DNA of 64,000 bases. It comes from Pocillopora damicornis (lineage: Eukaryota). The DNA lies in assembly GCF_003704095.1 (NCBI RefSeq), contig NW_020847627.1, positions 1 to 64,000 on the forward strand, written 5' to 3'. The position numbers and the translations under genes were made by a program. Each line of letters begins with the position of its first letter. Within the stretch, counting starts at the first letter, position 1. Positions 1 through 36,100 of the stretch are shown piece after piece. The notes below the pieces were generated by a model that was not told the DNA's origin, did no database searches, and saw only the letters and a program-made list of their open reading frames with translations.

Positions 1-1014
1 ATCGAGTTTCTCGATTGTTTGGACGTTCCCCTTAGGATGACTGAGAATTCAGTGGTTGTCGCAGTTGGGGAATTTTTAAGAAAGTTTGAAGCTATCAGAT
101 GTGTTTCTATTTCGCGGTGTAATTTCACGTGCATTCTGCGTTACCATAACGGCCAGGCGTTTTTTTACATCACTCGTTTGGACCTGTATTGTAATGACCA
201 TGCTGACTTATTTGATGTCACCAACTTGACTTCCACTCCATCCCACTCCACAAGTTCGTCATCAGAGGGATTCTGTTTGAAATATCTAAGCTTTCTTCAC
301 GTTTATACAGATGGCAACGAGCGAACGATGAAATGTCTTGTTACCATTTTTAGAGATTGTAAGAATTTAAAAGATATTTCAATTCAGGGTGTTACTAAAC
401 GTACTTGTGAACTTCTTCGATATGTACCAAACCCCCGTACGTGTCGGGTACAGTTTCGTTTTTTCTCCTTTTTTCCTTTTCGCGAACCGTCGCTGACGTT
501 ATTCGACGTAATGAAGCTCGCTGGTTTGTTACCACAGTTTAAGAATCTCGTCTCCCTTGACCTTAACTTGAATAACTGTTGTGCTGAAGCAGTAAACAAA
601 CTGGTTTCTAGTATCACGCACAAGACTCTTGAGAAACTGGGACTGTGTGGCATTAAACTGACTCCAGTCACAGCCGCCGCGCTTGGTCGGTCAATTTCTG
701 AAATGTCGTCCTTACGTATGCTCTCGATATCTGGGCCGAGAAGAGGGTTTCTAGAAACAGGATTTGACAGAACATCTCTGGTTTCACAATTATTTACGTT
801 CAACACAGGAGGTTGTCGTTTCTTGCCCAGTTTGCATGAGTTATTTCTTGAGCGTTTAAATTTGAATGAACGGGGCTTACGTGAGCTGTTGGATAATTTG
901 AAATTCTTCTCAGAGCTGACACTCTTAAGCCTATATGGCAATCCACTGGGTGACGCGCACACGGTTCACTCTATGGTGAAAAAAGCACTGCCTCGGGTTC
1001 ATGTTTCTTATTGA
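1..1014 (+). CDS. C-terminal leucine-rich-repeat region of an NLR (NACHT-LRR)-like receptor; 5' end lies outside the window
   Basis: Frame 1 is open from base 1 (IEFLDCLDVP...) to TGA at 1012-1014. RI-like LRR units: LKYLSFLHV, LKDISIQG, LVSLDLNLNNC, LEKLGLCGIKLT, LRMLSISG, LHELFLERLNL, LTLLSLYGNPLG. No NACHT domain is visible in the window, so the NLR call is an inference. Confidence 0.7.
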   Translation: MEFLDCLDVPLRMTENSVVVAVGEFLRKFEAIRCVSISRCNFTCILRYHNGQAFFYITRLDLYCNDHADLFDVTNLTSTPSHSTSSSSEGFCLKYLSFLHVYTDGNERTMKCLVTIFRDCKNLKDISIQGVTKRTCELLRYVPNPRTCRVQFRFFSFFPFREPSLTLFDVMKLAGLLPQFKNLVSLDLNLNNCCAEAVNKLVSSITHKTLEKLGLCGIKLTPVTAAALGRSISEMSSLRMLSISGPRRGFLETGFDRTSLVSQLFTFNTGGCRFLPSLHELFLERLNLNERGLRELLDNLKFFSELTLLSLYGNPLGDAHTVHSMVKKALPRVHVSY

Positions 1015-2559
1015 TAACGCCAAGTTCATTCACCAAGTGAAGGACACAGACGTTTGCACTGACAGAAGGAATGATTGTCTTTAGTATCGCGTCACTTAAG
1101 TATCACGTCTGCCACTTACATTGCCTGACGTCATGGAATGTCAATTGTAACAACAGGCAATGGAACTTGTCTCCAGCTACTTGTTAGATGACTCGAGTTT
1201 ACATTTCATTTTAGGTTAGAATCAAGAACTATTAATTAATGTTTTAATTTTAACGGAGAAAGGTTTGAATGTATGAAAAACTTTCAATAGGTAATTAAAA
1301 ATTCATGGAATTGAATCAGCCTTTCCAAGTTTTATTCATTTTTATTTTGGTACGTGAGAGGAGCGCATAATGTCGAGTGCGCGGAGCGAGAGTCCTTGCG
1401 GAGCACAAAAAACGAAGAGAATAATGTTCTCGTCTAAGACTTAATAAAAAGACGGTTTCTCGACTTCTCCTCAAGTCATTACCATATCTTTTTAACATTT
1501 TCCCTCACGACACTACGAAATTGCGTGTCAAGTTTAAATCAACACGAGTCTGCTTCAGATAAGCTTAAATTCATTTTGTCTCCATAATTAGTGAAGGCAA
1601 ATATGTAAACAAGAGCAGTTTTTATATTTGAAAAAAAGTATTTTTCAATACGATCATAGCATGCAGATACGTGGACGGGCTCTGAAAACAGTGCTCTAAA
1701 CGATGAGCTAAGACAAAGTGGATGGTCTGTGAACAGGTCACCATAGGATATTTTCTTTTAAAATTTACGTTAAAAAAATATCATTTCTTTGCATCCTACC
1801 TAAAGTCTAAAATTGATAGATATTGATGTAGAACAGTTTCCTCCAAGTTCAGAAATAGTATAGTTCCTCAAATTGGCATGTCAGTTGTCCATAGTCTACT
1901 TCATACTTCTGTCATCATCAGGGAACACACAGAGGGAGAGACTTTTTTTAAAAAAAAAAAGAAAAAAGAAAAAAGTCCTGCTAAGCATGCCTTCACCCCC
2001 CTGCCTTGTTGGCTTAAGGTGATGGGTTTGCCTCAAGCCTACCCCCTCCCTCCCCTATTCAAAAATTTGCCAATTGACTTAATGCACGTGAAGAGTTCTT
2101 ATAACTATTAATAAAGGGTGTAAGTTTCTAAAGAAACCAAGGTGCTGTGTCGGGGTAGATGGGGAGTATAACAAGATAATTTTAGTTTCACCAACTGAGT
2201 TGATAATGTAAATTGGCTTTCGTAAAGAGTTTCTAAAGCTGTCTTTTGTTTTTCTGAAGCCTCTCAGCAGGCCAGCCTTTAAAATCTGATTGGCTGTAAT
2301 GAGTAAAGCTTTAAACCACAGTCAAAAAAGTTAAGTTAGGCTGTAGGTTTGTCTGCTCGTAGTCAAAACCTTGGGTACTGTTTCTTCCCATATAGACCTC
2401 CCAACCAGTAATAAGCATTTATCTATGCCTGACTGCTTCTTTTGCAAGGCAAAAAGCTCCCCAGAGGACTCTATCAGAGTTTCTTGGGTAACAGCTTTCT
2501 TACCAAATTTGTTTGCTATTTTTCTAGAATAAACAAAAACAGCTGTTCTTCAGTAACCC

Positions 2560-6557: not shown

Positions 6558-9500
6558 ATGGAGTCAATTACCACGACTTGTCTTATTGATCTTGCCTTTG
6601 ACTTATCAGTTGATTGGAAAACGCTTGCACGTGTTCTTGGTCTTTCTGAAGAAGTATCAAGAATATGTGATGACTACAAACGGAATGTCTTCGAGCAAGC
6701 TTACCGAATGCTGCAAACTTGGAAACGAAGAAACGGATCCCAGGCTACTTATCAAGCCTTAGGTGAAGCACTTTCACACGATGTGGTGTCGCGTAATGAT
6801 TTGGCACAAAAATACTGTGCGGGAAGAAACAGGAGCTCTTTGGACGAAGGTAAGAGATTGAAATCGTTTCGAAGCTTATTGCACAGCGCAAAAAGAGCGG
6901 CGAAATTTACGAAGAACTTCGATTTCTTACAAGTTATTTAATTTCTTTTGAAATAATTGGCTCAGTGATTCTTGATTTTAACACCTGGAAGAATATATCG
7001 TGTTTGTTACGTCCTTTAGCAATGACTGAGTCGAAAACGAGACAGTTTTATCGATCATCCATTCGAGTGTGACCGACAACAGCGTTACATCTTTGGTAAT
7101 CAATCCGACGATTTCTGGGCATTATTATTCAGTTGTTTAAATAACAGACAGACAAACAAACATAACAAAAACGCTTTACATATTTGCGCCAGAATCATCA
7201 GATTTGTTTGTGTTGGGTCAAACTGATCCTCAATAGTGTGTATACTTTCGACTACATATTGTTACAGTACATTGCAATATTGAATTATTTCGAGGCAAAA
7301 GAGGAAACGAAGCCCTTCAAATTCTTCAGGTCACAGGTAGATCATATAACCCATTGAATTTGAGAAAGTGTGCCGTCGGTTATTATTATCACTCGTGTGA
7401 TTATTAATCTGTATCGTTCACTATTATTTTCAACGATCAATCTCAGCCTGATTTAATTGATCGCAGAGTGTCGTGTCACTTATTACGTGCCGTCTGTGTC
7501 CTATCAGTTATCGCCGTGTATAAGTGGTTTTGTGCGATGTAAAGCGATAGTATTCATACCGTAGGGGGGAGGGGGGGGGGAACTTAAGATAAGTCGTGGC
7601 CGGGGTTGTGCTGCTTTATTATTTTATCTCTGACCTTCTTCTGAGCGAAATACGGCCCTCGATTCAATTGTTTTGGGTTTCGGAATATCGACTCGTTCAG
7701 CCTCGTATAGCCTTTTCAGACAGAATTAGAAATAGGGTAATTTAGAATTATCAACCGAGTTGATAACGTAAATTGGCCGCCGTAAAGAGTTTAAAAGCGG
7801 ACGTTTCGAGCGTTAGCAATTCGTCCGAGCGATTGGAGGAATTATGACTTGTGTGTGGGTTTCTATTCAGAAAATGGAGCGACGCTCCGTAATCATCCTG
7901 GGCAGCATATGGCAGTTTGCGGCCTTTCCCTACATCTAGGCAGTTCGGAAAGCCGCAAAACTCTAGAACAAAAGTCAACGAGCGCTTTTCATTCAATTAA
8001 TTTATTCTTAGAGAGAGATGTTTTTTAGTCTTGTGACGAGCGTGGGACAAAGAAAAAAAAATTTTTTGAGTCAAGTGATTCTGATGATGACTTCCACTCA
8101 GGTTTTCGAAACGTCGGTCACCACTACGGACAACAGTCCTTCTCAGGGCTACACTTACCCGGTCGATCAAACTACACTATTACATGTAACTGAAATGTAG
8201 TACAACAGCTTGGCCGTGAAAGGTCTGGGTACGAGACTAGTCCCCTAAGCTCTCCTACACTATAAAGGATCTCAGGGTGAATACCGTCCTGAAAGGTTGT
8301 GTGTCTCGACAAAGTTCCTCATTTGCAGTCGTTCGTATTCTTCTCCATCCTTAGCCATCCAGAGAGGATGAGTGGTCTCTCGTAGCCTTGATTTTTTTTA
8401 TCCCCTCTTTCGTTGGGATTTTCTTTCCACTGATGTGCCATTTTGTCTGGGTTCCTTAGCTTCCAGTTCTGCAAGAAGAGCTACGCCTCATTGTCTCGTT
8501 TTTTTTTTCTCTCTCAACGCCTTGCAGGGATCGACCTTAAAGGACTCAAGACCGGCATGGTTACCATCGCTGACATGGTCTCCATTGCCAACAACTTTGG
8601 AAAAGAGTGGATGTGGGTCGGCCGACTTCTCGGGCTTGAAGACTCCTTGTTAGACGGCATCAAAGAGGATCTCTCACAAACTTACGAATGTACTTACAAA
8701 ATGCTCGAGTGGTGGTGTAAGAAAAAAGATTCTGACGCAACTTACGAGTGCCTTGCACGGGCGTTGTTACACAGAACAGTTGGCATGCGGGAAGTTGCTG
8801 AAAAATTCTGCGTGGACCACCGAGAAAAAAAGATCGGTATGTTCCAGTTGCTGAATGAAATAACAACCCTCAGTCTCAGAGAATATCAGAAAACAAGACA
8901 AAAAGATTGCTAGAGCCGGTTCAGTTGAGCATATCCATAAGACGCTAAGGAAAAGTAGAACCTTTGCCTTTATACCCAGTGTTAACATCTGTAATGTTTT
9001 TTTCTTTAATTTCATGTCAGCCACGTTAAGAAAACGCTAGCTGGAGAAAAAGAAGCTGATCCCTGATCACTTGAGTTTCAAACAGTTCGTTAGCGATTGC
9101 AACCACATTTAACGAAGTGGTGATATAGGTTGTTTTTGCGAGTGATCATCGGCTAGAGACTATAAACCGGCCAATATTGTCTTGTAAGAGACTATATTCT
9201 CTTGCGTCTTGTTATTGTTTTATTGATCGTGTCACTATTTAAAACATTCGGGATTTCCGGGTGTACTTTTACATGACCCCTAATACGAAACTATTCCTCC
9301 CAAGAGAGCCCCTGATAAAGTCTTAATTGCATGTAGTAGCTTACGTTTTTTCATTACTTAAATCAGCCTCTGCTGCACCTTCTGGAGAAGGAAACACACC
9401 AATAGATAAGAAATTGAAGAATTTGACCCTGAATGGTTCTACGGCATGTGAATTCGCGGGAAGCTATACCGAGGCGCCAGGCGCAACAGGAAACAAAAGC

Positions 9501-10551
9501 TTAGCAGGTAAGCTCAGTCTGGACTCGTGGCTCAGTACATTTCTTTACTTTAATCACTATTGTTAAAGAAGGCAGTGCAAAGAAGGTTTAAACTGCTGGT
9601 GATAGTACAGTGAAGTGGTTAAAAGTTTAATTAGCAGATGAATGATTGAAAAATGGTCTGTTATTGAAACCCAGGACCCAGGTTTGCAGTGGGAGGGAGG
9701 GTAGAGTAAGGTAAGCGGAGTTGCTGTTGTTGTTGATGTTTCTCCTCCCCGTATATTTGCTGTCCGCAAAGCAAAGATTTCCTTCACCTAACTTTGTTTA
9801 GCGATTAATTAGTACCTATCTAAAGTAAGCTGGAAATCTTCGTGGACAATTAAGGAGATGAGAGTAAGAAAATCTCACCCTCAGAGTCAAACGAACAGAT
9901 AGGAAACACACCCGTCCGCGTGACAGGTGCGTAATGTTCTGAACTACAAAGCGAGCGGGTCGGGTTTGACTACTTGATTTGGCTTTTCGAACTTCTTTCT
10001 CCCTCTGTGGTAAAGCATTTTATTCTTTCTTGGTCGGCAACTACCACGACGTAGGGTCGAAATGAAAAGGAAAGAGAAAATGTCTTCCCATGGAACAACA
10101 TTCAGCATGATTCATTTGACCCTCACTGTTAAGTTAGCAAAAGCAAGGAGAAGGAAAACGAGGTTTAGAAATAACTATCAACTGAAAGTATTATACGTTT
10201 AACTTATGACCAGGTACCACGCCACCCAGAGTTCCTGAGCCGGCTGATGATTGCATAACTAAGAACGTCATCACCATTCTGCCATACAAAGTGTGGAAAG
10301 AATTGGCCATTAAACTAGATCCCGAGCGTCCATTAGGAGGAGATTACAAAGATCTCGCTTGTGAGATGGGATATACTGTGGAGAAGATCTTGTATTTCCA
10401 GTCGAGGAATGGTCCTACGGAAGCCCTACTCACTGACTGCGCAAACTCAGTCTCAATTGACGAACTTTGTAACAAGTTGGAGGCGATTGGAAGATCTGAT
10501 GCAAAGATAGTGGTTGATGAATGGATCAAGAAAAAGACTACAAATGTGTAG
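6558..10551 (+). CDS. Triple death-domain protein (DD1-DD2-linker-DD3), 359 aa; exons 6558-6849, 8528-8836, 9367-9507, 10214-10551
   Basis: All introns are GT-AG and phase 1; the spliced ORF is 1080 nt. DD1: DWKTLARVLGL...EQAYRMLQTW...ATYQALGEAL. DD2: EWMWVGRLLGL...YKMLEWW...ATYECLARAL. DD3 is MyD88-like: LDPERPLGGDYKDLACEMGY...PTEALL...LEAIGRSDA. Confidence 0.85.
8076..8120 (+). ncRNA. Minimal type I hammerhead-ribozyme motif in a Penelope-like repeat remnant (about 8070-8185)
   Basis: TGATT-CTGATGA-T-GAC...TTC-GAAA-CGTC-GGTCA: core boxes present, stem I has G-U pairs, stem II is imperfect. Confidence 0.5.
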
Positions 10552-13171: not shown

Positions 13172-14614
13172 ATGGAGTCGATTACCACGACTTGTCTTAT
13201 CGATCTTGCCTTTGACTTATCAGACGATTGGAAAAAGCTTGCACATGTTCTTGGTCTTTCTGGAGAAGTATCAAGAATATGTGATGACTACAGACGGAAT
13301 GTCTTCGAACAAGCTTACCGAATGCTGCAAACTTGGAAAGGGAAAAAGGGATCTCAGGCTACTTATCAAGTCTTGCGTGAGGCCCTTGCACACGAAGCCG
13401 TATTGCGTAATGATTTGGTTCAAGAATACTTTGAGGGAAGAGACAGGAGCTGTTTGGACGAAGGTAGGAGATTGAAATCTTTTCGAAGCTTATTGTACAG
13501 CACCTCAAACAACAAGAGCGGCGACATTTACAGAGAACTTAGATTTCTTAGGAGGGATTTCATTTACTCAAGTAGCTGGTTCACTGATTCTTGATTCTGG
13601 CATCTGGAAGAATATATAGTACATGTTACCTCCTTGTGGATTGACTTAGACAGTTTTTACACTGATTCATTCAAGTGTGACTGTTAACAGCTTTAGATCT
13701 TTCGGTAAACAATGGGATGAAGTTGAGACATAAGTATTCGGATGTTTCACTAGCAAACAACCGAAACAAAACCAAAGCACGTCACAGATGTGCGCTGAAA
13801 ATTATCAGAGTTGTTAGCAGTCAAAATGGTACATACTTTTAAGTGAGTGATATCAAAGTAAAATGCAATATTTAATCGTTTCGAGGGGGAGGTGGACAGA
13901 AATCCTTGAGGGCCGGGGTAGGGGAGGATTTGGTCGTATTTCTGAGCTATTGCTAAGATTTTGATGATATAACGCGATGCAAAACCATAGTAAACCAAAA
14001 AAGGGACTAAACCACGAATGCAACACGAATGAAAGGGTAGCGAAAAAAAAAGAGTTAATAAACGTGCGTCTCAAAACTTTGCACATTTCCGGGCCGTTCC
14101 TTACAAAATAACAACGTAAAATCACTTAATTTTCCAGGCTGGTCGTTTGCAATCCGTTGAATCTCCTCCACCTTCAACTACCCTTGCGCCTTCTCTATTT
14201 ATCATGGCCTTTCTTTCTAAGGAACTAACATTTTGTTTGGGCTCACTCGGATTTAAGGTAGTTTTGTAACAATAGCCACTCACCCGGCTGTCTCGTTTGT
14301 TGTCTCAATACTTTACAGAGATCGACCTTGAAGGACTCAAGCCCGGGGTAGTTTCCAGCAGTGACTTACTCTCCATCGCCAAAGACTTAGGATTAAAGTG
14401 GGTCTGGATTGGTCGACTTCTCGGGTTGGAAGACTCCTTGTTAGATGGCATCAGAGAAGATCACATACAAGTCTCTGATTGTCAATACAAAATGCTCGAG
14501 TTATGGAGGAGGGAAAAGACTACTGGGGCAACCTACCAGTGCCTTGCAAGGGCGTTGCTGCACAGAACAGTTTGCATGCGAGATGTTGCTGAGAAATTCT
14601 GTGTGGAGAATTAA
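13172..14614 (+). CDS. Two-death-domain paralog (DD1-DD2, 195 aa) or recent pseudogene; exons 13172-13463, 14319-14614
   Basis: Paralogous to exons 1-2 of 6558-10551 with the same splice phase. TAA at 14612-14614 lies a few codons before the retained G|GTATGT donor. Confidence 0.7.
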
Positions 14615-15105: not shown

Positions 15106-15727
15106 GTTCAACGCGAAGAAACTGATGGATGAATGGATCAAGTCACAAGATTGCCAATAGGCAGCCTGCAATATTTCGATCTACCGCTTTCTTTTGTGGC
15201 ATGGGGATACAGAAAATCCTAGAAAGAAAAGAACAATTCTCAAAAATATGTCCCAGGGATAGCGAGCAAGCCAGAAATATATTTAATCATTGATTTTCTT
15301 GACGATGAAAAAAATGTTTGAGCAGTAGATTTCACTAAAAAGAGTTTAGAAAACGAAGCGTTGTTAATAGATAATCGATATATCCACCTGTGTTCCTTTT
15401 TTTCGAAAGACTAATGTATGTCACAATCATGAATACTAATTTATAATTGTATTCGAGTAAAGGAATTTTTGTTACTCTGTACGCCGTGAATTTGAAGAAT
15501 AGAAGCTTGTACGTTGCTTGAGTTTGGTCAGCTTGTTATTACGGTGTTCTAATAACTGATCAAGCAGCCTACGCGAATGTACTTATAAAATGCTCGAGTT
15601 GTCGTGCAAGAAAGGGGAATGCTAACGCAACATACAAGAGCCTTGCACAGACGTTATTAAACAGAGCAATTTGCATGCGAGAAGTTGCTGAGAAATTCTG
15701 CGTGGACCACTGAGGAAAAGAGATCGG
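15106..15727 (+). pseudogene. Death-domain exon remnants: internally deleted DD3 exon (15106-15180) and 3' part of a DD2 exon (15568-15727)
   Basis: The atgaccag|GT acceptor jumps to DEWIKSQDCQ*AACNI. The DD2 piece reads ECTYKMLEL...MREVAEKFCVDH* with a frameshift and a stop. Confidence 0.8.
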
Positions 15728-22340: not shown

Positions 22341-23185
22341 CATATCGATCTCTTTCTCTCAGTGGTCCACGCAGAATTTCTCAGCAACTTCGCGCATGCA
22401 AACTGCTCTGTGTTATAACGTCTGTGCAAGGCTCTTGTAAGTTGCGTTGGCATTCCTCTTTCTTGCACAACAACTCGAGCATTTTATAAGTACATTCGCG
22501 TAGGCTAGGTTGTTGATTTAAGGAACGCTCTGTTATATAATGGTTTATTTGTTCCCTAAGCCCAGCACCATAAAAATGACCTTCATTAGGCTATGGCTCT
22601 GTTTTAGTGGCCACACTATACATTCGACACTCAGAACAATTCTTCTGTGGGGAGCCAATGTAAGGCCTGGGCAACCGGGAGCCGAAAATTGATAAGCTGT
22701 AACGATGCATTTTAAAAGTATTTCTTGGGTGCTTGATCAGTTATTAGAGCACTGTAATAGCAAGCTGACCAAACTCCAGCAACGTACAAGCTTCTATTCT
22801 TCAAATCCACGGCGAACAGAGTGAAAACAATTCCTCTGCTCGACTACAATTATAGATTAATATTCATGATTGTGACATAAATTAGTCTTTCGAAAAAAAG
22901 GGAAAAAGGTGGATATATCGATTATCTATTAACAACGCTTCATTTTCTTAACTCTTATTAGTCAAATCTACTGCTCAAACACTTTTTTCTTTGTTGAATA
23001 AATCAATGATTAAATATATTTCTGGCCTACTCGCTATCCATGGGATAAATTTTTGAGAATTGTTCTTTTCTTTCTAGGATTTTCTGTATCCCCATACCAC
23101 ACAAAAAAGCGGTAGATCGAAATATTGCAGGCTGCACACTAGCAATCTTGTGACTTGATCCATCAGTTTCTTTGCGTTGAACCTG
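22341..23185 (-). pseudogene. Mirror copies of the DD2 fragment (22341-22504) and the DD3 remnant (about 23117-23185)
   Basis: Reverse complement of the 15106-15727 region; reads IKSQDC*CAACNI and MREVAEKFCVDH*. Confidence 0.75.
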
Positions 23186-24073
23186 GTCATGCGTCAAACG
23201 TAAAATAAGATTAATTGATGGTAATTTTTAATCCTTTATTGGTGTCTCGGGTTTTTTGTCTCAATTTCTGGCTTCTTTTGTTTACTGTAGAAAAAACATG
23301 TGACAAAACAGTGAGTCATGTCTGATGTTGTTTCATGAGAAAATATTTTTCTCTTCCTATTCTTTCACCACAAATCTATCATGTATCTTGTTTTCAGAAT
23401 CAGAGCTTATAGCCAAGTTCTCGCGGCGAAATGTGATTCAAAACCTGCTAGTATCAATGTCTTGCAAAATGTTTGGGTTTCTCGTAGTGAAAAGTTCTAA
23501 AAACAAATTTTTCTTCTCTTTTTTTGGTGCATTCGACATTTCTTGAGTGCGAACCTAATACTAAGGTGTTCCAGCTTGGGCTAAAAAAAATTGCATTGTG
23601 AAGTATTCTTCGGTTACATACTTATTCACTTCTTTGGTGCCTCATCAGATTGTCGAACTGTACAAGATCCCAAAACCTGTAAGAATCCGGTTTTTAACTC
23701 GGGTCTCTACTGAGTGGTAACAATGCAAACAAGTTTCAAGCAGTAAACCTATCTTTGTAAACCTATCTGTTACAATGTTAAGTATACTAAAGAGGTGCAC
23801 TCGGGTCATGGTCACCATGAATCATTAAAATGAAATAACGAAACCGCTTACTTAAAGATATAAGTGAAAAGCTAAATTTTCTGAAATAATTTTCACAAAA
23901 ATTGGTGACGAGTAATTGAAATCTTCAGCCCAAACAACCTTTTGTTTATTTAATTAAAAGCTCTACTCCGAGTTGCTCGCTGGAATTTTTTTTCTTTTTA
24001 AACATTCCCAGCCCCAACCCCCTCCCTCCTAAAAGAAAAACTTGTTGGCGTGCGTATAGTAGCTCTGGCTGTT

Positions 24074-24413
24074 GCAGGTTACACATTTGCAGTTTCGTCA
24101 CTTGATCCATTCATCAAGCACTTTCCTTGCATCAGATCTTCCAATCGCCTTCAGCTTGTCACAAAGTTTGTCAATTGAGACTGAGTTTGCGCAGTCATTG
24201 AGTTGAGCTTCTGTTAGATCTTTCCCAACTGGAAATACAAGATTTTCTCCATGTCATATCCAATTTCACTGGCGAGATCTTTGTAATCTCCTCCTAATTG
24301 GCGCAAGGGATCTAATTTAATGATCAATTCTCTCCACACTTTGTAGGGCAGAACGGTGATAACGTTCTCAGTTATGCAATCAGTCGGCTCAGGAACTCTG
24401 GGTGGCGTAGTAC
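24074..24413 (-). pseudogene. DD3 (MyD88-like death domain) exon pseudogene
   Basis: Homologous to 10214-10551; 1-nt deletion after ILYFQ; ends DEWIK*RNCKCVTC. Confidence 0.85.
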
Positions 24414-27400
24414 CTGGTCATAAGTGAAACATAAATTACGATTCATTGATAGCTATTTCTAAACCTCGTTCGCCGTCTCGTGTTTTTTTTTTCCTCATAT
24501 CGACTTCTAGCTTGTTATTGCTGACTGGACTGTGAGGGAAACATATGGTCAAATGGGTCATGCCTGATGTGAGAATATGTTTTAAAAGAAAATAAATGTT
24601 TTAAAACATACGTATTAATCGCTCAGCCAAATAAAGCATATAAAACAACTTCGTAACGCACTTACTGCATGTTCGAAAGTTGATCGGTCAGGTTGCGGAA
24701 TTCCATGCCTTGGTCTTTTTCCCTCTGCTTCTCTATCTGCTGCTTGTACCAGTTCACTGTTTGTACTTCCACTGTGGCCTGAAGTTTCAGGATCCGGTTT
24801 CTAGGTTGCTTATGGGTTTCTTTCATTTGTGTGCCAATGTCAGACAGTTTTATGTGACGCCCTGAAGTATCGCTTTGTTCTTGGTTCTTCTTTTGCCGTT
24901 TCGTTCTCCTTTTATTCGCTTCCATAACATCCCAGTCTTATTGATCAGTTTCTTTGCGACACANNNNNNNNNNNNNNNNNNNNNNNNNNNNNNNNNNNNN
25001 NNNNNNNNNNNNNNNNNNNNNNNNNNNNNNNNNNNNNNNNNNNNNNNNNNNNNNNNNNNNNNNTTCCAGACATACGACTCATGGTGCGGCGAGGCGTACG
25101 AGGCATACGAAACATAGAGGCAAACTATAGAAAAAAATTTTATTCAGATAAAAGGCAGTCTCTGACTGCATGTGCCTACTTTTGAATAGTTGTAGAGTAT
25201 GGCAGAAAAAACACTCTGGTGTAAAATGCAGACGGGTCAGAATGAACACCTCTTGTTATTGCTAAATTGCGACCAAAAGAGCACTTGGTTATGACAGAGT
25301 TTGTGCACTAATCGACTAACCCGCCGGATATAGGACAGGAAATTAATAAAGTAGGTACATGTATTAACTGTGCACAAGAGATTATAAACTGAGAATTTTA
25401 CAGTTTCTTGATGCGCATTAAATGAATTTTTAAACAAAACTTCACAGCTTCGTACGCTCTGCGTACCTAGCGCAATGTTCGTACCTTCTCCTTCAGGTTT
25501 GAGCCTTGGCCACGTTAACTTATTTTTGTTTTTCTTTTCCTTTTTTCTTTCTTTTTTTTAATCGACATTCTTCTTCAAGGATATGTTAGACGTGTTCAAA
25601 GTAAAATGCACATGTGAGAACAGTTTGACGACGAAGCGGTCACGTTCAAATCGATAACAAGTCGAAATTCAGAGGTGAGACCCTGAACAAACATCGAAGT
25701 AAACCCGACAAAACCAAAAATGAATCCAAAGAAACCCAATCAGATTCGTTCAACGATGGCCAGAGTTGGAGCTGGTCCAGATCACAAGAGTCGTTACGAG
25801 TGCCTCACGATAGTGCGCCATTTTGAAAACCGTGAGGTGTTTTAAGGAAGGTTTACAGACTTACACGACACCGTAACATAGTTCCTACCACAGGCCAACT
25901 GAAACGAATGTAATAACAACGCAAAAACACGTCCTTGATATTATCATTAAAAACCTACTAGAGGTTTCTTTGTAACTAAAAGAACATGGCTATTTTATCA
26001 TATTTTGCTAACCCATCTGGATTACAGCTATTCTACAAATCTGTCTCAATGCCGATGCAATAATAACTACTTAATTATGAAATATGAACGTAGATGCCTC
26101 ATCAATGTTGCACAATGCTGCAAAATCCTCTTAAGCTGATTTACAGAAGACAAAAGCCCCAAAAAGAACAAGCGATAAGGATGTTTGATTCCCACAACAA
26201 AGACTGTAAAAGGATCGAGTCTAAAAAAAGACACACACCCAAGAACACGTCGAGTGATTCACGGAGTCGAAGCGAGAGAGAAAATTCATTTAAGGAGGGG
26301 AGAGAAAGTAAAAAATTGTTTGTTCGACCTACGCTCTTTTGCTTCCACTAAATATTGGCGGCCGCGATTTCAACGTCACATGACGAAGGTTATTCTGTAG
26401 GCTTTTTCCAGTAGCAAAACGATACTAAGCCATAGCATTCTTCAAATATCTTAATCTAAAAAAAAATTATATAAAAGGCATTTTGCGATGGCTCGCATGT
26501 ATCGCATGCCTCGCCGACTCTCAATTTGTAACAACCTCATATTAATATGCTCAATTCTGGCCATTGTACGCAGTAAGTGAATTCATACTGACCTACGCTT
26601 TTCTCTGTTTCTGGGACTGACCGCGTGACTCGGACGATTGAGAGTGGGGACGTTACCTGTTGACGAAGAAAGTCAGGATTTTAAGGTTAAACAACATCGC
26701 ATTGACAAGTCATGTTAGGTGATTGTCCAGAAAAGCAGCAATTGACACAAGTTAACTCAATGATGGTCAAAAGGGAATTCACGCGGCCATCACTGTTATT
26801 TCGTTTCTTTTTCCAAGTTTTCCCATAGACAGAAGCAATACCACAATGCGAAAAGAGAGGAAGGTCGACGAGGGTAAAAGACTTCACAGATGGCACGACA
26901 TGGGCGCAAACCGAAATCACCAGCGACTTCAACCGATGATAGATGCGATGACACCTGAGAAACCTCATATGTGTCAAACACAATCGGACGATTGGTGGAC
27001 ATGTCACGCTAGATAGATATTTGGCGTGACATGTTAGCACTATAGTTTGCTTGCGGTCGTTAATTTCCTTAGAGCTGCATTATGCGACACGGCCAGCTGA
27101 AAAGTCAACCTATACCGTTTACGTTGTTTCAGAATTTGAGGTCCTTTTTCGACATGTTCCCTGATCCTAAACGCCTCGTTACGTATCCTCCACCCTAAAG
27201 ATGTTGCGCGGCTGGTTGACTTATTATTTTCGTTGTCACTCAGCCGTGGCATTTCATTTCGTACGTGATTGTATGTGATTTTTGTGTGTGTTTTTTTTGT
27301 ATGTGTTTTTTTTGTATGTGTTTTTGGTGTTTTCTTTCGGAACCAGTTCAACGACTGAGTCTATCAACACGGTTTCAACATTTACTTTTTTCAAGTCCTG

Positions 27401-28920
27401 TGTCCTCTTCCTTCGCTGTGAAGTGCCAACAAGTTAGTTGTAATCTTGTTTTCGTAATAAGCCAGATAATAATACAAGGCTCGTGAGACGCCTGTCAATT
27501 TCTCGTTGTAATTGCATGAATTCTTTCTAAAGGGTTAATTGACCTCGCGGCTTTTGTGTCAATAAGCGGTATATGACTGTTGACGCTCACGGAATAATTA
27601 TCTTCAAACCAGAAAATCTTGAATCAACCTGAGCCATCAAAGCTGTAATCATCCACAACGCGGACCAGAATTATCACACAGGCGGAAGAATCTTTATAAA
27701 TGAGGTGAGCACAATAAACTGAACACTTCTTACTCAAGGTTACTTGTCGTCGTGCAGTCTCATATCTGCCGTAAGATCGAAACATAACCCTGTTGGCTCT
27801 GAGACGAAAACGAAGTAGTCGAGCAGGATTAAAAATGGAAATGTTTAACCTTTCTTCCTAGAGCTAACTTAAGAGATGCACACCAAGATTACACGTATGC
27901 TTTCAGTGATCAGAACCACAAAATTGTTATTTCCGATTTTTCTTTTGTAAATGGAGCGAGTGCATATTGTTATATGTGCTGGCAAACTCATTGTACAGAA
28001 CACAAGCTACTTTTACTGAAGCTGTAATTTTATTGTTTGCCAAGGTATGCAGCCCTCGGCCCTCAGTTATTCCACTGATCTAGAAGGGCAGCGAAATGAC
28101 AACCAAACGGCTTCAGTGACTCATACCACTCATTTAGTAGCCTGCAGGGCTAAACTGCAGAATACCCTGCCACTCATTTACGTGTCATTGAATAGGAATA
28201 GCGTCTATTGTGTTATGTCTCGTCCTTGTAAGCTTCACGTCACATGTAAATGAGATGAACCAAAGTGGCAGGGTATTCTGCGGTTACTCCGCCTGCAGTG
28301 CAGGCGTCTTATTATGGCGAGCTGACGTTATAAGCTAGCGATCGTTTATCCGACCGGCCATGTTTTATTTCTTTAATTTCTCTCACTCGCATTTCTTTGC
28401 AATTTAAGTCANNNNNNNNNNNNNNNNNNNNNNNNNNNNNNNNNNNNNNNNNNNNNNNNNNNNNNNNNNNNNNNNNNNNNNNNNNNNNNNNNNNNNNNNN
28501 NNNNNNNNNNNCGCCTGTGTGATAATCCTGGTCCGCGTTGTAGATGATTACAGCTTTGATGGCTCAGGTTGATCTAAGATTTCCTAGTTTTGAAGATAAT
28601 TATGCCGTGAGCGTCAACAGTCAGATACTGCTCATTGACACAAAGCCGCGAGGTCAATTAACTCTTCAAAAAGAATTCATTGACAGGCTTCTAACAAGCC
28701 TTGTATTATTATTCAAATGTGTCCCTCTGGCTTATTGCATACGAAAACAATATTACAACTAAATTGTTAGCACTTCACAGCGAAGGAAGAGGACACAGGA
28801 CTTAAAAAAAGTAAATGTTGAAACCGTGTTGATAGACTCAGTCCCTGTACTGGTTCCGAAAGAAAACACCAATAGCCAAAAACACATACAATCACAACGA
28901 CATGAAATTCCAAATACCTC

Positions 28921-29000
28921 AAGTCGCCTTAAGTCGCCTTAAGTCGCCTTACGTCGCCTAAAGTCATCTAAAGTCACCCTAAGTCTCCTTAAGTTTCCGT
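28921..29000 (+). repeat. Tandem 10-mer (AAGTCGCCTT) x8, degenerating toward the 3' end
   Basis: Read directly. An inverted unit GGCGACTTAAGG at 29074-29085 suggests subterminal repeats of a small transposon remnant. Confidence 0.85.
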
Positions 29001-30280
29001 GGGTTGCTATTGGTTACGCAATGTCATAAGGGTTCCACCCTTCCCAATTGAACCTATCCACTCCACTCCAATCGGCGACTTAAGGTCCCAGGGTAGGCCT
29101 AAAGAGCGCAGTTTGGACAAACAAATTTTTTACTTTCTCTCCCCTCCTTAAATGAATTTTCTCTCTGGCTTCGACTCCGTGAATCACTCGACGTGTTCTT
29201 GGCTGGTGTGTCTTTTTTTAGACTCGATCCTTTTACAGTCTTTGTTGTGGGAATCAAATATCCTTATCGCTTGTTCTTTTTGGGGCTTTTGTCTTTTGTT
29301 AATCGGCTTAAGAGGATCTTGCAGCATTGTGCAACATTGATGAGGCATATACGTTCATTTTTCATAATTTAGTAGTAAGTATTACATTGGCATTGAGACA
29401 GATTTGTAGAATAGCTGTAATCCAGATGGGTTAGCAAAATATGATAAAATAGCCATGTTTTTTTAGTTACAAAGAAATCCCAAGTAGGTTTTTAATGGTA
29501 ATATTAAGGACGTGTTTTTGCGTTGTTATTATATTCGTTGCAGTTGTGGTAGGAACTATGTTAGCTGTTCATTCTGACCCGTCTGCATTTTACACCAGAA
29601 TGTTTTTACTGCAATACTCTACAACTATTCAACAGAAGGCACATGCAGTCAGAGACTGCCTTTAACTGAGTACAATTTTTTTTCTATAGTTTGTCTCTGT
29701 TTCGCATGCCTCGCACGCCTCGCCGCACCATGAGTCGCCTGCCTGGCATGCGTAATGGCAAGACTCATTAATGAGATCCTGTGGCGAGCAATTCAAGCTT
29801 GAAAGCTTAGTGAAACCGCCACAATTAGAGAAAAAAGTAATATAGTAATTTCGCAGTACTTGAAGTAACCTTTGCTAAAATAGTGAAACAGATTTTCCTT
29901 TATTATCATACCTTAGGAAGATTGAAGAAGAAGCAGCAGTAGACTTTCCAAAATTGGCCTTTTTGGGAACTTTTAGTATGAGAGGAGACATTGATTCGGT
30001 CTCACTTTTCTTCAAAAATCATTGCACTCATTACTGAAGCAGCTTACTAAAGATACACGTCTTCTCTGCGTATGGGCGTTTTTGTGTTCTTATTGAAGGA
30101 CAAAAAGTTGTAAACTTGAAGGATTGAAATCTTAACAATGGTTGCCATGATCGAAAAATGCAGTCACTTGCAGCTGTAACTAATAGTCTATAACCTGACA
30201 TGTAATTGAACACGCGTAAATCTAAAAGAGAACTTGTAGATTGCGCTTGAAAAGAAAGAAGCATGAATCCAAATGCGAAA

Positions 30281-30830
30281 ATGGCGGAGGGAAATGTTGA
30301 AATGTTTGGACCAGGAGCTCCCTTCAGAGCTCAAAGAACTCCTGCTCAGAACTTTAATCCTTCAAATGGTTGATGGTGACGATCATACCTTTTCAACGGG
30401 ATCTTTTGTGAGAATGGAAGAGGACAGAGAGGAGTTATAAGAACTGAGTCGGCTATAGTTCAAGCTAACGATCAAGCGATCGTTTTGAAGAATCTGCCTT
30501 CGATTGTGTCGCAAAGAAACTGATCTATAAGACTGGGATATTCTGGAAGCAAATAAAAGGAGAACGAAACGGCAAAAGGAGAACCAAGAACAAAGCCGAT
30601 ACTTGGACAATGCTTTTGCTGTATTCCCAAGAAATTGATCACAAAAAACTATCTGACATTGACACACAAATGAAAGAAACCCATAAGCAACCTCGAAACC
30701 AGATCCTGAAACTTCAGGCCACAGTGAAAGGGCAAGCAGTGAACTTGTATAAGCAGCAGAAAGAGTAGCAGAGGGAAAAACACTAAGACATGGATTTCCG
30801 CAACCTGATCGATCAACTTTCGAACATGCA
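30281..30830 (+). pseudogene. Decayed first exon encoding a predicted coiled-coil protein; mirror copy at 24667-24960 (-)
   Basis: AAAATGGCGG start (MAEGNVEMFGPGAP...), then a Q/E/K-rich helical stretch (LSDIDTQMKETHKQPRNQILKLQATV...) with stops, ending at a GTAAGT donor; lies about 1 kb upstream of a DD3 pseudo-exon. Confidence 0.45.
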
Positions 30831-31855
30831 GTAAGTGCGTTACGAAGTTGTTTTCTATGCTTTATTTGGCTGAGCGATTAATACGTTTATTTTGTTTTAA
30901 AACAATTTCTTTTTGTGTCGTCCATTTCTGTCTGTAATCATGCTCATGATTGTCAAATCAGACTTACGCTTCGCGGCCGCTCAATTTTGTTAATCACTCG
31001 TATGATTACAGACCGAATTGGACTCAACTCGGTCCTATTACCATTACTAGCAGAATGGAAGTTTCCTGAAGTCTCGCCGGTCTTCAAGTGCTTGAATTTT
31101 TATTGATTTTGTTGTTGATGTTCATCGTTCCCGTAAATTTGTTGTCAGTAAAGCAAAGATTTCCTTCACTAAAAATTTCCACAATTTATGGGAATTATTT
31201 TTACCCATTGAATAGTGCCTGTCTAAAAAAAGGTGAAAATCGTCGGGGATGATAAGGGAAAAAAGAGAAAGGAAATCTTGTCCCAGCCCCAGGAGTAAAA
31301 ACACATGCACTACAGAACGAGCAGGCCAGGGGCCCGTTTCTCAAAGGTCCCGGAAACTTAAAGCTAACAAGCCCATTGAGCTGTTTTGTTTTCATTCAAG
31401 ATGGGGGTTTCAAAAGTTTTGAAAATTATACAATAAAACTGTAAGGTAGAGAAGCAAAATGGATTAGTTGGAATGCCAGAACCAGTGTCTCTATTTTTAA
31501 AATTTTGATTGTTTTAAATTATGCCTTCGGGCCCGTTAAGCTACCAGAAATTTCGAGAAACGGGTCTCTGGTTTGACTGCTGATTTGGTTTTTCGAGCTT
31601 CTTCCTCCCTCCATTGTAAAGCATCTTATTCTTTCTTGGTCGGCAACTATGACGTATGGTCGGAAGGAAAAAAAGAAAGGAAAATACTTATCTATGAAAC
31701 AACATCAGGTATGATCCATTTGACCATATGTTTCCCTCACAGTTCAGTCAGCAATAACAAGCTAGAAGTCGATACGAGGAAAAAAAACACGAGACGGCGA
31801 ACGAGGTTTAGAAATAGCTATCAATGAATCGTAATTTATGTTCACTTATGACCAG

Positions 31856-32198
31856 GTACTACGCCACCTAGAGTTCCTGAGCCGGCTGATGATTGCATAA
31901 CTAAGAACGTCGTCACCATTCTGCCGTACAAAGTGTGGAGAGAATTGATCATTAAATTAGATCCCTTGCGCCAATTAGGAGGAGATTACAAAGATCTCAC
32001 CAGTGAAATGGGATATGACGTGGAGAAAATCTTGTATTTCCAATCGGGAAAGATCTAACAGAGGCCCAACTCATTGACTGCGCAAACTCAGTCTCAATTG
32101 ACAAACTTTGTAACAAGCTGAAGGCGATTGGAAGATCTGATGCAAGGAAAGTGCTTGATGAATGGATCAAGTGACGGAACTGCGAATGTGCAACCTGC
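31856..32198 (+). pseudogene. DD3 exon pseudogene
   Basis: TTPPRVPEPADDCITKNVVTILPYKVWRELIIKLDPLRQLGGDYKDL..., 1-nt deletion near 32045, ends DEWIK*RNCECATC. Confidence 0.88.
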
Positions 32199-32902
32199 AT
32201 CAGCTGGAGCCACTATGCGCACGCCAACAAGTATTTCTTTTTTAAGGAGGGAGGGGGTGGGGGTGGGAATGTCATAAAAAGAAAAAAATTCCAGCGAGCA
32301 ACTCAGGAGTAGAGCTTTTATTTAAATAAACAAGTTGTTTGGGCTGAAGATTTCAATTACTCGTCACCAATTTTTGTGAATATTATTTCAGAAAATTTAG
32401 CTTTTCACTTGTTTCTTTAGGTAAGCAGTTTCGTTATTTGATTTTAATGATTCATGGAGACCATGACCCGAATGCAGCTCTTTAGTGAACATACTATTGT
32501 GACAGGTAGGTTTGGAAACCTGCTTGAAACTTGTTTGCATTGTTACCACTCAGTAGAGACCCGAGTTAAAACCGGATTCTTACATGTTTTGAGATCTTGT
32601 ACAGTTCGACAACCTGATGAGGCACCAAAGAAAAGACACAAGCTGTTCCAACAGCTTGCAGAGTTCAGTGACACGAAGTAGAGTTTAGTGACATGAAAGT
32701 AAATAAGTACGTAACCGAATAATAATACGATGGAAGCGCATTAAAGAAACGTTAAAATCAAGGATTGCGTAGCTGCAGTTGGGGACTATCCCTTCCTTTC
32801 ACCCCAAAAACTTGTCACCCCTTCAAAATCGTGCTCCTCACACAGAGGCCTGGAAACAAGGATAGTTGTCAGTTCACTTCGTCCAAAGAGAGGAAGGCAG
32901 AA

Positions 32903-35900
32903 ATGACTTCCCAGAGGAACGAACAAGAGAACTTGCGGACTTCGATTTTCTCGATCGAATTATCTAAAGGTCCGCGCTCTCCTCCTATGAGGAAAGGAAC
33001 AGCCTTCACAGTGAAACTGGATGGATCATTTTCAACCTATTTGATGACTAGTTGCTCAGTGGTTGAACGAAGTGGAGCAACTTCCTCAAGCCGGCTAACT
33101 TGTAAGCGATTTGGTCAGTCTCTTCCGGAGGAGAAACATCCTATAAACCCAGATTCAGCAGAATCTACAAAAATGGAAGAATTCTGCTTTATTCCTTACG
33201 AATCGCCTTCGAACTTAAAATTAATCAGCGCCGATAAGCTGTGCAAAGAGGGAGAAATGATGACGCGGAAGTCTACTTGCAAATCATTTACATTCTTAGG
33301 AAATTCCTTCACCATCATGACTTGGGAATTCAAAAATGATGAAGAGACTTATGTTTTAACCGGAATTGATTCTGATGTGGAGCTTGTTGCGAGTTCTTGC
33401 AGGGGATCGCCTGTAGTTTCCATCGACGATCTACGGACGGTTATTGGAGTGGTGACCTGCTCGTCAAACGGAGACCTTGAATTGCTCTTCCTCGAAGCAA
33501 ACTCTCTACGTGAAATAGAAGGTAGGGATGTGCTTTAATGTAATTCTTAATGTTAATTCTTAGGGAAAATCCCCCTTTGAAATTTCCTGTGAGGTCTTCA
33601 GTGACAATGAAATATATGGTTTGAATTTTTTGGTTCCTTCGACTTCAATCCATCCTCCCCAGTCAGTGTGATGCTTGGCTGGCTGGCGGCGAAGGTACGT
33701 TAGTTGTAAACTTACGGTCGTTCTTTGACTTTTGTATGCAACCACATTAATCGAGAACAGGGAGTCACACTTATCTGAAGGCTTCTCTCAAAATGGTTCA
33801 GGTAGCGGTACAAAATTTTCGCCTACTTGCAGGGAAAAACAAATGCAACATAAGTTATGGTTAAAAGCAACTGGAACGAATAAAGTTTTGAAGTTAAGTA
33901 GCCTACTTAAAAACTATCTAGTGTTTGGCTAATAAATTTACAATATTGGGATAATTTTATCAAAACTTATCAAAACCATGCTGACTTTATCGATGATTAT
34001 CATTCTAGGACAACTTAAAGCCAGATGTTCAGATGACAGTGGAATTGATGTTGCAGACTCTCCCTTAATTGTACGTGGTCCACCATCATCTGCGTCTGCC
34101 CGTCATCAACGAAATACACATCCAGGTACAGTTTTCGCTGTGCTAGTAGAGCTAAGTTTACGATCACACACTTAATGAATTCAGTGAATAATTTTAGTTA
34201 AGCTATACTGAAAAAGGTCAATATCACGGAAGGAAAACGACAATATATGTATATATATATACATGTTAATTCGTCCAAATATACTCCAGTTATTTACGTA
34301 AATATGACCAGTTCAGTTGGGCCTAAATAATTATTCTCCTCCCTGAGCCTTTTTACAGTCTTTACCCTGGGAAGTAGTATTTCATTGCGAGTTTTATTGA
34401 GCTAGACAAATAACACTCTGGGATCTATTCGTAAACAGAAACCAAAGCAGAGAGAAGTTTTTTTTATTTTGATTGTATTGAAAGATGTTAAGATTGATTT
34501 TAACGCTGAGATAGTAGATTTAGATGACATTAAATGTTGGTAGAGTGCCTAAAGAAAGTTTACAGATCACTCTTCTTTTGCTTTTGGCTTACAAGATCTT
34601 CGAGATGTGTACTTATGCAGCAACATAAGGCAGTTTAATTGATATGAAGTGCATACAAATGCTTTGGGTTTGTAGATGTACAAAAAGATAGCTTTTTGAC
34701 CAATCAGACTGTACATGATACCTTATCTATATTGTAAATGCTTACACATCAAGATGACTATCAAAATATTGAAGCTTATATCTGCAATTAGACCTATAGG
34801 GGTATTAAAATGAAACTTGATTTTTAATATCACATTTAATTTGTGGCAACCCAGCAAACAGAAATCTTAATTTCCCTTTAGTGTGCAAAATAGTTTTCAG
34901 ATCTGATATTTTAAAAATACAAGGACTGTGGTGGTTCAGATTTGTTAACAGTGAATAATATTCTTACAATAATATTCTTGTTACAGTAAATATGTGTCAT
35001 AGCATTCAGGAACAATATTCATGCTCAAATGCTACATTCTTGTGAATAAATTGTGCTTGCTTGATTTGAAGGAAACCTGGTAGTTAATTTCTAGCACCCA
35101 TGTAATTGTTCTTAGTAATTTAAACTTAGTAATTACTGTCTTTTTACATACCAATACACAGAAGATACTGGAACTAATGCCCAAACATCATCTGAAGGTT
35201 TAGAAAAACGTCTATCACATGTGTCAGTTCAGGGTAAGAATTTCACATGTATTTCTTACTAGGACACTGATCCTCCATTAGAGATTTTTTCAACTGAGCT
35301 ACCTGCAGATTTAGCAATTTGGTAGTGTTTGATCTGTATGCATTTCTTAGAAGAAGGCTGGTCTTTCATCACAGATTTTCTGTAACTGTGCTACCTGCTG
35401 ATTTATTTAGCATATAAGTGGTGGTATTTGATCTGTTCCCCTTTTAGGATTTGAATAGGTCACAGAGAACCTGGAAAGTCTCAGAATTTCATTGTATTAT
35501 CAACTAGGCTTGGGAAGTCATGGAATTGCAGTTTTGGTCATGGAATATCAAGGGAAATGTCTTTCTGTGAACTTCAAATTTTGTCTATGGAAATCCTTTA
35601 CTTTGTACAATTGTTGTCACTCCCCTGACACTTATTGAAAGCAAGGTTTTCCTGTAGCTGAATAATTAAATAAATGATACAATTAATTTAACACAGGATT
35701 TTCTTGACATCTAGAGACAACTCCACATACAACACAGACTTCCTCCCATGAAAGTAAACCTGAAAAGATCAGATGCATTTGGGATGAACAGGTGTCATCT
35801 TTGAAATCTTCTCAAGATTTGATGAATGATTTGAAGTTACATCTGGACCCAAAGAGGGATCTTGGTGGAGATTATTGTTCATTAGCAAGTGCATTTGGAA

Positions 35901-36100
35901 AAAACATGAAGTATATATGGTATTTGGATTCAAGACCGAGTCCTGTTGAACATTTGATACGAGATTACTGTGCGACTTTAAGACAGCTTGAAAGGGCATT
36001 AATTAGTCCTATGGTCAACCGAGGAGATGTTTCAGACATAGTTAAGGAGTGGGTTGAAAAAGAGGGTTGTCACTGTGAAGAATGTGGTGGTATTCGTTAG
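32903..36100 (+). CDS. Trypsin-like (pseudo)protease - linker - MyD88-like death domain - CxCxxC protein, 397 aa; exons 32903-33521, 34009-34125, 35162-35233, 35715-36100
   Basis: All introns are GT-AG and phase 1; the ORF is 1194 nt. Trypsin_2-like motif order: GTAF, YLMTSCSVV, EEFCFI, SCRGSPVV, VIGVV. DD: LDPKRDLGGDYCSLASAFG...SPVEHLI...NRGDVSDIVKEW. Tail: CHCEEC. Confidence 0.8.

Follow-up and report, generated by a model that had tools for sequence, protein, structure and literature searches.

In bacteria, STAND NTPases fused to death-like domains adjoin genes that fuse the same death-like domain to a trypsin-like peptidase, and this pairing has been proposed to operate via homotypic adaptor contacts, the 'effector-associated domain principle' of Kaur et al. 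2021 (PMC8195603). Among cnidarians, Nematostella vectensis has a trypsin-Death protein whose trypsin-type domain is placed with those of the trypsin-PDZ (HtrA-like) proteins (Babonis et al. 2019, PMC6767649), and the combination of a death domain (DD) with NACHT has been reported in cnidarian NLR repertoires, that of the coral Pocillopora damicornis included (Emery et al. 2021, PMC8260672). Here we analyse a Pocillopora immune-gene neighbourhood in which the tail of an NLR, two DD-only genes (A and B) and a gene encoding an apparent pseudoprotease joined to a DD (gene C) adjoin on one strand. It lies at the beginning of a P. damicornis scaffold, whose initial 64 kb (G000:C4262:1-64000; window base 1 is scaffold base 1) are called the window below; the genome comprises 234 Mb on 4393 scaffolds. 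A literature search with the gene identifiers pdam_00011668-73 found no paper.

The neighbourhood is best explained as the product of tandem duplication and exon shuffling of DD exons, and its conserved core is the gene pair A-C. Judged from sequence, gene A carries two DDs of the RIPK1/FADD/PIDD type (DD1 and DD2) and one of a private subtype (DD3), to which the DD of gene C (DDz) belongs as well. In the mechanism that we favour, the products of genes A and C would co-assemble via the DD3/DDz subtype in a helical DD oligomer, a proposal to which we assign equal chances of being right and wrong. DD1 and DD2 of gene A, and those of its truncated paralog gene B, would dock onto upstream DD-bearing proteins. 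In Pocillopora, one candidate for such a partner is the neighbouring DD-NACHT-leucine-rich repeat (LRR) receptor. The dead protease domain would serve for binding or scaffolding and would have no enzymatic role.

A preliminary description of the locus had pictured a three-tier signalosome, in which the receptor recruits DD1 and DD2 of gene A while DD3 co-polymerises with the trypsin-fold/DD protein. For such a model the bacterial STAND/death-like-domain/trypsin arrangement is, by analogy of layout, the closest parallel, as in both cases a death-fold-bearing STAND-type sensor stands beside a gene fusing death-fold and trypsin-fold domains. The coral genes, however, are animal and intron-bearing, a DD-only protein is placed between the sensor and the trypsin-fold gene, and the trypsin-fold domain is apparently catalytically dead. 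Moreover, the sensor DD is not closest to the DDs of its neighbours, and the adjacency of the sensor is not conserved. The Nematostella protein resembles gene C in that it is a cnidarian protein uniting a trypsin-type domain with a Death domain, whereas the gene C domain goes unseen by Pfam Trypsin and Trypsin_2, has apparently lost the His and Ser of the catalytic triad, counts only some ten true relatives, and is joined to a DD of a private subtype with a CxCxxC tail. Given these bacterial neighbours (PMC8195603) and the Nematostella protein (PMC6767649), the earlier statement that no animal pathway of this layout has been described was too strong. The sequence counterpart of the Nematostella protein in P. 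damicornis is probably a locus on another scaffold, C1935 (L034 = G000:C1935:1047000-1056999), with plus-strand exons at approximately 3255-3545, 4666-5088 and 6822-7118 that match Trypsin_2 at 2e-9 and Death at 3.5e-10. Gene C is a divergent and probably inactive variant of this rarely noted architecture.

The PIDDosome and the Myddosome are helical, multi-layer assemblies built from the DDs of different proteins, and DD1 and DD2 match RIPK1, PIDD, FADD and CRADD by sequence. We know of no vertebrate adaptor made of three DDs only. As distinct from the Myddosome, DD3 and DDz have no preference for MyD88, and oligomerisation of the coral proteins is a prediction. The likeness to cnidarian NLRs with an N-terminal DD lies in the Pocillopora verrucosa ortholog of the receptor, which is DD-NACHT plus LRR tail; paralogs of this NLR subfamily, on the other hand, use N-terminal exons encoding a coiled coil or, probably, a DZIP3-type HEPN domain. 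Finally, FLIP(L) joins a dead protease fold to a death-fold domain and works by assembly and not by catalysis (PMC7586951). That protein combines a caspase fold with a death-effector domain, while gene C combines a PA-clan fold with a DD, and any active partner of gene C is hypothetical.

Pfam Death (PF00531, gathering cut-off 22.6 bits) matches open reading frames (ORFs) at 6558-6941, 8443-8913, 10291-10551, 13172-13594 and 14297-14614 of the window. The scores all lie above the cut-off, at 48.7 bits for DD1a, 35.5 for DD2a, 31.4 for DD3a, 43.2 for DD1b and 28.7 for DD2b, the letters a and b denoting genes A and B. Gene A has three exons on the plus strand. Exon 1 (DD1a, 6558..6849; Death 8e-13) has a GT donor with fitting phase and is of the RIPK1/PIDD/FADD type in a PDB sequence search; exon 2 (DD2a, 8528..8836; 1e-8) has AG and GT ends and is of the RIPK1/FADD type; exon 3 (DD3a, 10214..10551; 2e-7) follows an AG acceptor and contains the stop. 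The joined frame encodes 312 amino acids (aa) in the order DD1-DD2-DD3, with canonical GT/AG ends, matching phases and a single terminal stop. In the ortholog from a divergent coral (ERZ25067872, ctg20980), three exons with homologous splice sites give an open frame of 317 aa, and exon 1 is likewise 292 nucleotides (nt) long. In the PDB sequence search, the DDs resembled by DD1 and DD2 are those of RIPK1, PIDD, FADD and CRADD, and DD3 matches p75NTR weakly.

Gene B is a truncated paralog of gene A. Its exon 1 (DD1b, 13172..13463, plus strand; Death 4e-11) and exon 2 (DD2b, 14319..14614, plus strand; 1.5e-6) encode 195 aa, and the stop lies within exon 2, five codons ahead of the position of the second donor of gene A. 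A 195-aa spliced ORF from transcript-like Logan contigs (P0021) is 98% identical to exon 1 and 95% identical to exon 2 and ends at the final residue of gene B. Since this match extends over both exons, gene B is expressed and spliced as modelled. The three-DD protein at 6558-10551 and the two-DD paralog at 13172-14614 are thus as the preliminary description had them.

Gene C comprises four exons on the plus strand: the trypsin-fold (HtrA-like) domain (32903..33521), two linker exons (34009..34125 and 35162..35233), and DDz with its CxCxxC tail and the stop (35715..36100). The open frame is 397 aa long, and all three GT..AG joints (33521/34009, 34125/35162 and 35233/35715) are present in poly(A) RNA contigs from four studies, which also show a long 3' untranslated region (UTR) reaching beyond 36749. 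In a relative, a single transcript-derived ORF of 369 aa (P0062) encodes the two domains together, with 74% and 62% identity to those of gene C. The two domains are tied by a disordered linker. Within the 3' UTR, at 36722-36918, the RNA word depth rises several-fold and many loose ends occur at 36793 and 36842 in all four runs, probably reflecting a dispersed repeat.

We now turn to the N-terminal domain of gene C. It is single-copy in the P. damicornis genome and has no Pfam match even at E 10, and among 1.84 billion cluster representatives only some ten true relatives were found. None of ten members of this protease-like family matches Pfam Trypsin or Trypsin_2, even at E<=10, and a PDB sequence search with the family profile gave nothing significant. 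Matches to WD40 and reverse-transcriptase proteins (P0010-P0014, P0016, P0017) were rejected as relatives, being short repeated-motif matches. The AlphaFold2 (AF2) model of the domain has a mean local confidence (pLDDT) of 75 and a predicted template-modelling (TM) score (pTM) of 0.79. With this model, Foldseek returned 392 PDB matches at E<=1e-3, all of them PA-clan proteases, led by HtrA1, MamO, DegP, V8 and 3C with TM scores of about 0.6. According to the model, the domain has the double beta-barrel chymotrypsin (trypsin/HtrA-like) fold.

In the motif alignment, the position of the catalytic His is occupied in the gene C family by Ser, Ala, Glu or Asp, with T-S-C-S-V-V standing against T-N-A-H-V-V of HtrA-type proteases (alignment A1). 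The position of the nucleophile, the serine of G-x-S-G-x-P, holds a nearly invariant Arg (R167), followed by an invariant G-S-P-V-V. The domain thus appears to lack both the catalytic His and the catalytic Ser, and to be a pseudoprotease and not a protease. The protease-fold/DD protein that had been described at 32903-36100 stands as regards its trypsin fold (AF2, Foldseek) and its RNA-supported joints, but Pfam sees neither of its domains. With His and Ser apparently lost, the product of gene C would not be a catalytic effector.

DDz has no match to Pfam Death at E<=0.1, and its orthologs in another coral match weakly (0.0039). The AF2 model is helical, with 5-6 helices, and death domains fill the first 14 rows of the Foldseek list with probabilities of up to 0.96, but with E>0.1. 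DDz and DD3a are 33% identical (BLASTP E 1e-15), in line with the relationship given in the preliminary description. The genome has at least 118 DD exons, and of these the best relative of DDz is DD3a, and the best intact relative of DD3a is DDz. Together with their orthologs and an inverted DD exon found between the two genes in other corals, they form one subfamily with the motif L-D-P-x-R-x-L-G-G-D-Y and usually a C-terminal CxCxxC (alignment A3). On this sequence evidence, the homology of DDz to death domains is convincing, although the Pfam hidden Markov model alone would not establish it. The best weak matches of DD3 and DDz are p75NTR and FADD. We rejected the label 'MyD88-like' for this subtype, as MyD88 is absent from the sequence matches and not preferred among the fold matches.

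The inverted exon is intact between the gene A and gene C orthologs of other corals, where it lies on the minus strand and has the CxCxxC tail (L019 5637-5945; ctg20980 21443-21733, within L025/L026; L041 4198-4479). It may be a third member of the A-C module. At the corresponding position of the window, there is only a frameshifted inverted copy of DD3.

The pair A-C is conserved in order and strand in the divergent coral, while adjacency of the NLR is seen only within Pocillopora. In a gap-free stretch of 38.5 kb, the divergent coral has DD1-DD2-DD3 on the plus strand, the inverted DD, and then the protease-like exon 7.3 kb downstream, with the DD of the gene C ortholog another 5.3 kb further on; a second contig of the same assembly has the same layout. 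DD1 is 66% and the protease-like domain 48% identical to the counterpart in the window. Neither the LRR tail nor either of two NLR paralogs found a match in the 17.8 kb that lie upstream of gene A in that stretch. The expectation that linkage would be kept in related genomes holds therefore for genes A and C, adjacent and on the same strand, but not for the NLR, whose adjacency is genus-level and may be incidental. Within Pocillopora, a Tara scaffold (L024) reproduces window 5372-18288 at 98%, and other Tara Pacific scaffolds (L019-L022) carry the gene C unit twice in tandem, the copies being separated by a DD3 relic.

It is important to consider how often such neighbours would meet by chance. 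We counted no fewer than 118 Death exons, frequently arranged in tandem, on about 53 scaffolds of the genome, and no fewer than 65 NACHT exons; these counts are lower bounds, and so is the estimate of about 0.3 chance NLR-DD adjacencies within 10 kb that is expected from them. Because Death and NACHT exons are so numerous, a single NLR beside a DD cluster is not significant by itself.

As for the receptor, the C-terminal LRR-like part of a giant NLR exon occupies 1..1014 on the plus strand; frame 1 has no stop before that at 1012-1014, and the exon is cut by the scaffold start. The ORF matches the protein pdam_00011668 at 100%. Its Pfam matches are weak (LRR_9 E 0.06, LRR_At5g56370 E 0.5), but the homologous tail on scaffold C1135 matches LRR_At5g56370 at 2.6e-4, and three relatives (P0055, P0057, P0058) carry PF24758. 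The tail is 38% identical to the C-terminal part of a giant single-exon ORF on C4129 (1793 aa, NACHT 4e-14) and 34% identical to that of another on C1135 (1010 aa, NACHT 2e-21 plus an LRR match), NACHT and tail sharing a single ORF in both; Tara ORFs prolong its frame upstream by up to about 140 aa (P0035). These results agree with the receptor tail originally described. The closest copy of the tail within the genome (47%; C998:663728-664342, minus strand) was rejected as evidence on the receptor, being a fragment of 205 aa, probably a relic, that lies immediately downstream of an H6PD (G6PD plus 6PGL) gene.

Because the scaffold starts with the window, the assembly offers no sequence to the left of the receptor tail, and the syntenic P. 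verrucosa locus was read instead (L035, CM071749.1: 5,300,443-5,321,435). It aligns to window 1-6190 at 94-99% nt identity, broken only by a P. verrucosa long terminal repeat (LTR) retroelement. The latter has a 1347-aa ORF on the minus strand (L035 15853-19893; reverse transcriptase, RNase H, integrase) between the NLR and gene A and is missing from the matching point of the window (~5200); a precomputed annotation places a Vma12 gene over the same coordinates. A Death exon (L035 7591-7908, Pfam 5e-13) lies directly upstream of a NACHT exon (L035 8274-9347, 5e-19), which is about 0.6-1.7 kb upstream of the tail (L035 9926-10990) and in another frame. Judged from this ortholog, the NLR does not lack a death-fold domain, and the receptor is a DD-NACHT-LRR NLR, at least ancestrally. 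The large exon runs through three frames, with two shifts near 9305 and at 9935-9974 and with all aligned residues kept, and because of these shifts NCBI models it as two genes, an 809-aa Death+NACHT protein and a separate 330-aa protein. The frame shifts may mark a pseudogene or indel errors. The P. damicornis scaffold happens to start just past the second of them (L035 9965).

The NLR model of P. verrucosa has an N-terminal ORF of 349 aa, for which neither Pfam nor Atlas gave an answer. In the intact paralogs on C4129 and C1135 no Death match was found; their upstream ORFs are of the coiled-coil and, probably, of the HEPN type (DZIP3-type, an unverified Atlas lead). Two small scaffolds (C2094, C2599) were considered as the missing 5' part of the P. 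damicornis gene and rejected, with only 82-86% nt identity to the P. verrucosa upstream region and 63% aa identity in the DD. The DD of the P. verrucosa NLR has about 20 closer DD exons elsewhere in the genome (40-53% identity), and DD2b (34%), DD1a (37%) and DD2a (31%) of the window rank behind these. A subtype is thus shared between neighbours in the case of DD3 and DDz but not in that of the NLR DD and DD1/DD2, which speaks against the suggestion that the receptor recruits the latter.

The spacing of the genes needs a comment on the assembly. As it was made from Illumina reads with Chicago/HiRise scaffolding (PMC6208414), its runs of 100 N are scaffold joins; none of them falls within an intact gene model. 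At the gap 2560-2659 the join is collinear, since both flanks (1-2559 and 2660-4394) match P. verrucosa L035 (9965-12546 and 13489-15225) on the same strand and in the same order. Across the gap 24964-25063, the flanking repeat blocks are 1039 nt apart, compared to 1093 nt in the partner palindrome arm, which is consistent with continuity. The left flank of the gap 18289-18388 agrees at 98% with Tara scaffold L024 as far as 18288, but the scaffold then diverges from the letters right of the gap, running for about 650 nt that are 91% like the reverse complement of 19501-20360, so that continuity on the right is not borne out. With these last two gaps and a further one at 28412-28511, how far gene C lies from genes A and B, and in which orientation, rests here on HiRise joins.

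Two inverted duplications lie between genes B and C. Duplication A (15133..23163) has arms at 15133-18286 and 20145-23163 that are 90-94% complementary around the gap 18289-18388, and its left arm is confirmed by Tara L024. Duplication B (23754..32518) has arms at 23754-26236 and 29206-32518 that are 89-94% complementary, and contains the gaps 24964-25063 and 28412-28511. In both, the arms lie in different gap-delimited pieces of the scaffold, and the mirrored halves could be real palindromes or misplaced pieces of divergent haplotypes. Six dead DD exon copies had been noted in the window, but tblastn finds only four, even at E<=10, and these are two relics, each present once forward and once inverted. 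One is the 3' part of a DD2 exon with a frame change (15512..15803, plus strand), an 87% copy of gene A 8729-8895, with its mirror copy at 22287..22497 (minus strand). The other is a DD3 exon with a frame change and a TGA (31933..32198, plus strand), 0.7 kb upstream of gene C, with its mirror copy at 24068..24339 (minus strand). Taken together, the two forward relics resemble what would be the 3' half of a copy of a gene like A. Exon-like ORFs of an SLC22/MFS-type transporter also occur between the DD genes, at 17328-17534 (minus strand) and at 18633-18845, 19964-20182 and 20524-20730 (plus strand), the last exon being present twice, once in each arm of duplication A. The call rests on a weak Pfam MFS_1 match and typical C-terminal motifs.

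Against this background, the co-assembly of A and C can be compared with other explanations. The full three-tier signalosome, with its genes clustered because they work together, is in our view unlikely. The P. verrucosa NLR does have a Death exon upstream of NACHT, of the same broad class as DD1/DD2, the genes are all on a single strand, window 1-6190 is collinear with P. verrucosa and 5372-18288 with a Tara scaffold, DD3 and DDz are reciprocal best matches, and the bacterial STAND systems provide a precedent for the clustering (PMC8195603). The first tier, however, has no NLR or LRR match upstream of gene A in the divergent coral, its DD has some 20 nearer relatives than those of genes A and B, its P. 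verrucosa exon is spread over three frames and two NCBI models, and the intact paralogs show coiled-coil and probably HEPN-type upstream ORFs in place of a Death match. About 0.3 such adjacencies are in any case expected by chance at the least, and the last tier apparently holds no working protease. The more sweeping proposal, an animal counterpart of the bacterial STAND/death-like-domain/trypsin conflict systems, with clustered sensor, three-DD adaptor and terminal component assembling in tiers and with an ancient A-C core to which the NLR was recruited in Pocillopora, strikes us as unlikely too. A different possibility is that the dead trypsin-fold/DD protein is a cFLIP-like decoy that pairs with and regulates the active Trypsin_2/DD protease at C1935. 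That locus has Trypsin_2 exons with T-N-N-H-V and G-S-S-G-S-P-V motifs and a Death exon 1.7 kb downstream on the same strand, and the regulation of caspase-8 by the pseudo-caspase FLIP(L) would be a precedent (PMC7586951). Yet the DD at C1935 is not among the relatives of DDz, the two protease-like domains have no significant sequence similarity, and the joining of Trypsin_2 and Death at C1935 is predicted from exon proximity, not from splice evidence, so we consider the decoy very improbable.

A simpler account is an ordinary birth-and-death cluster, in which neighbours share subtypes by descent and act in separate pathways. Death exons are abundant and many are in tandem on single scaffolds (e.g. 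C3172, C2908, C3496, C2200), the window contains relics, a truncated paralog and inverted duplications, and the copy number of the gene C unit varies among Pocillopora samples, with one here and two on Tara scaffolds. Against this, the A-C neighbourhood, its strand and the exon structure of gene A are kept across corals at 48-66% protein identity. In such a fluid region, the linkage has outlasted what would be expected without constraint, which is a hint that constraint exists, and we regard the absence of functional coupling as somewhat unlikely. We see only a slight chance that the layout was created in assembly, from pieces that were mis-joined or haplotype-duplicated. The four 100-N joins in the interval, the Illumina plus Chicago/HiRise method (PMC6208414), the arms of both inverted duplications in different pieces at 6-11% divergence and the departure of the Tara scaffold from the window path at gap 18289 would fit it, but the intact genes all lie within gap-free pieces, independent assemblies agree with 1-6190 and 5372-18288 at 94-99%, and the order A then C recurs in gap-free contigs of another coral. 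An artefact might thus account for the mirrored relics, not for the genes or their neighbourhood.

A number of points weigh also against the co-assembly of A and C that we favour. The A-C synteny could be explained by origin through local duplication of a DD3-type exon, and in the scaffold the order and orientation of gene B and gene C depend on the joins at three unverified gaps. The RNA support covers genes B and C, while the gene A model is predicted from splice sites, phases and the orthologous structure. Of the five AF2 models, only one gives a good DDz, and its Foldseek E-values are above 0.1. The catalytic-residue calls come from motif alignment and a weak hhalign match (E 0.097) and not from residue-level structural superposition; with so weak an alignment to an active homolog, that gene C encodes a pseudoprotease is something we infer. 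Each protein-protein contact, and the direction of signalling, is likewise inferred.

The DD and NLR families are hugely expanded in corals, and almost no member has a known partner. A conserved pair with a private DD subtype, joining a DD-only protein with a dead HtrA-like domain, offers a concrete and cheaply testable binding hypothesis. If the pair, or the pair together with the NLR, assembles, the clustering of sensor, adaptor and terminal component that is typical of bacteria and fungi would extend to animal innate immunity, and a pseudoprotease would have a new role in death-fold signalling. If it does not, the locus would be a clean example of birth-and-death evolution of DD exons.

Some minor observations were made elsewhere. 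Four scaffolds (C574, C2278, C2851 and C3577; L028-L031) have single-exon ORFs of 504-725 aa with a C-terminal Trypsin_2 domain and long N-terminal regions that have no Pfam match. Downstream of the cluster, a minus-strand gene of the window includes an exon-like ORF (40389-40640) that resembles the catalytic-loop region of protein kinases with altered residues. Near the end of the window, at 62379-63182 on the minus strand, a 267-aa ORF has motifs of rhodopsin-type G-protein-coupled receptors (D-R-Y-like, and an end of the D-P-x-x-Y type), and its 5' side enters the gap 63209-63308.

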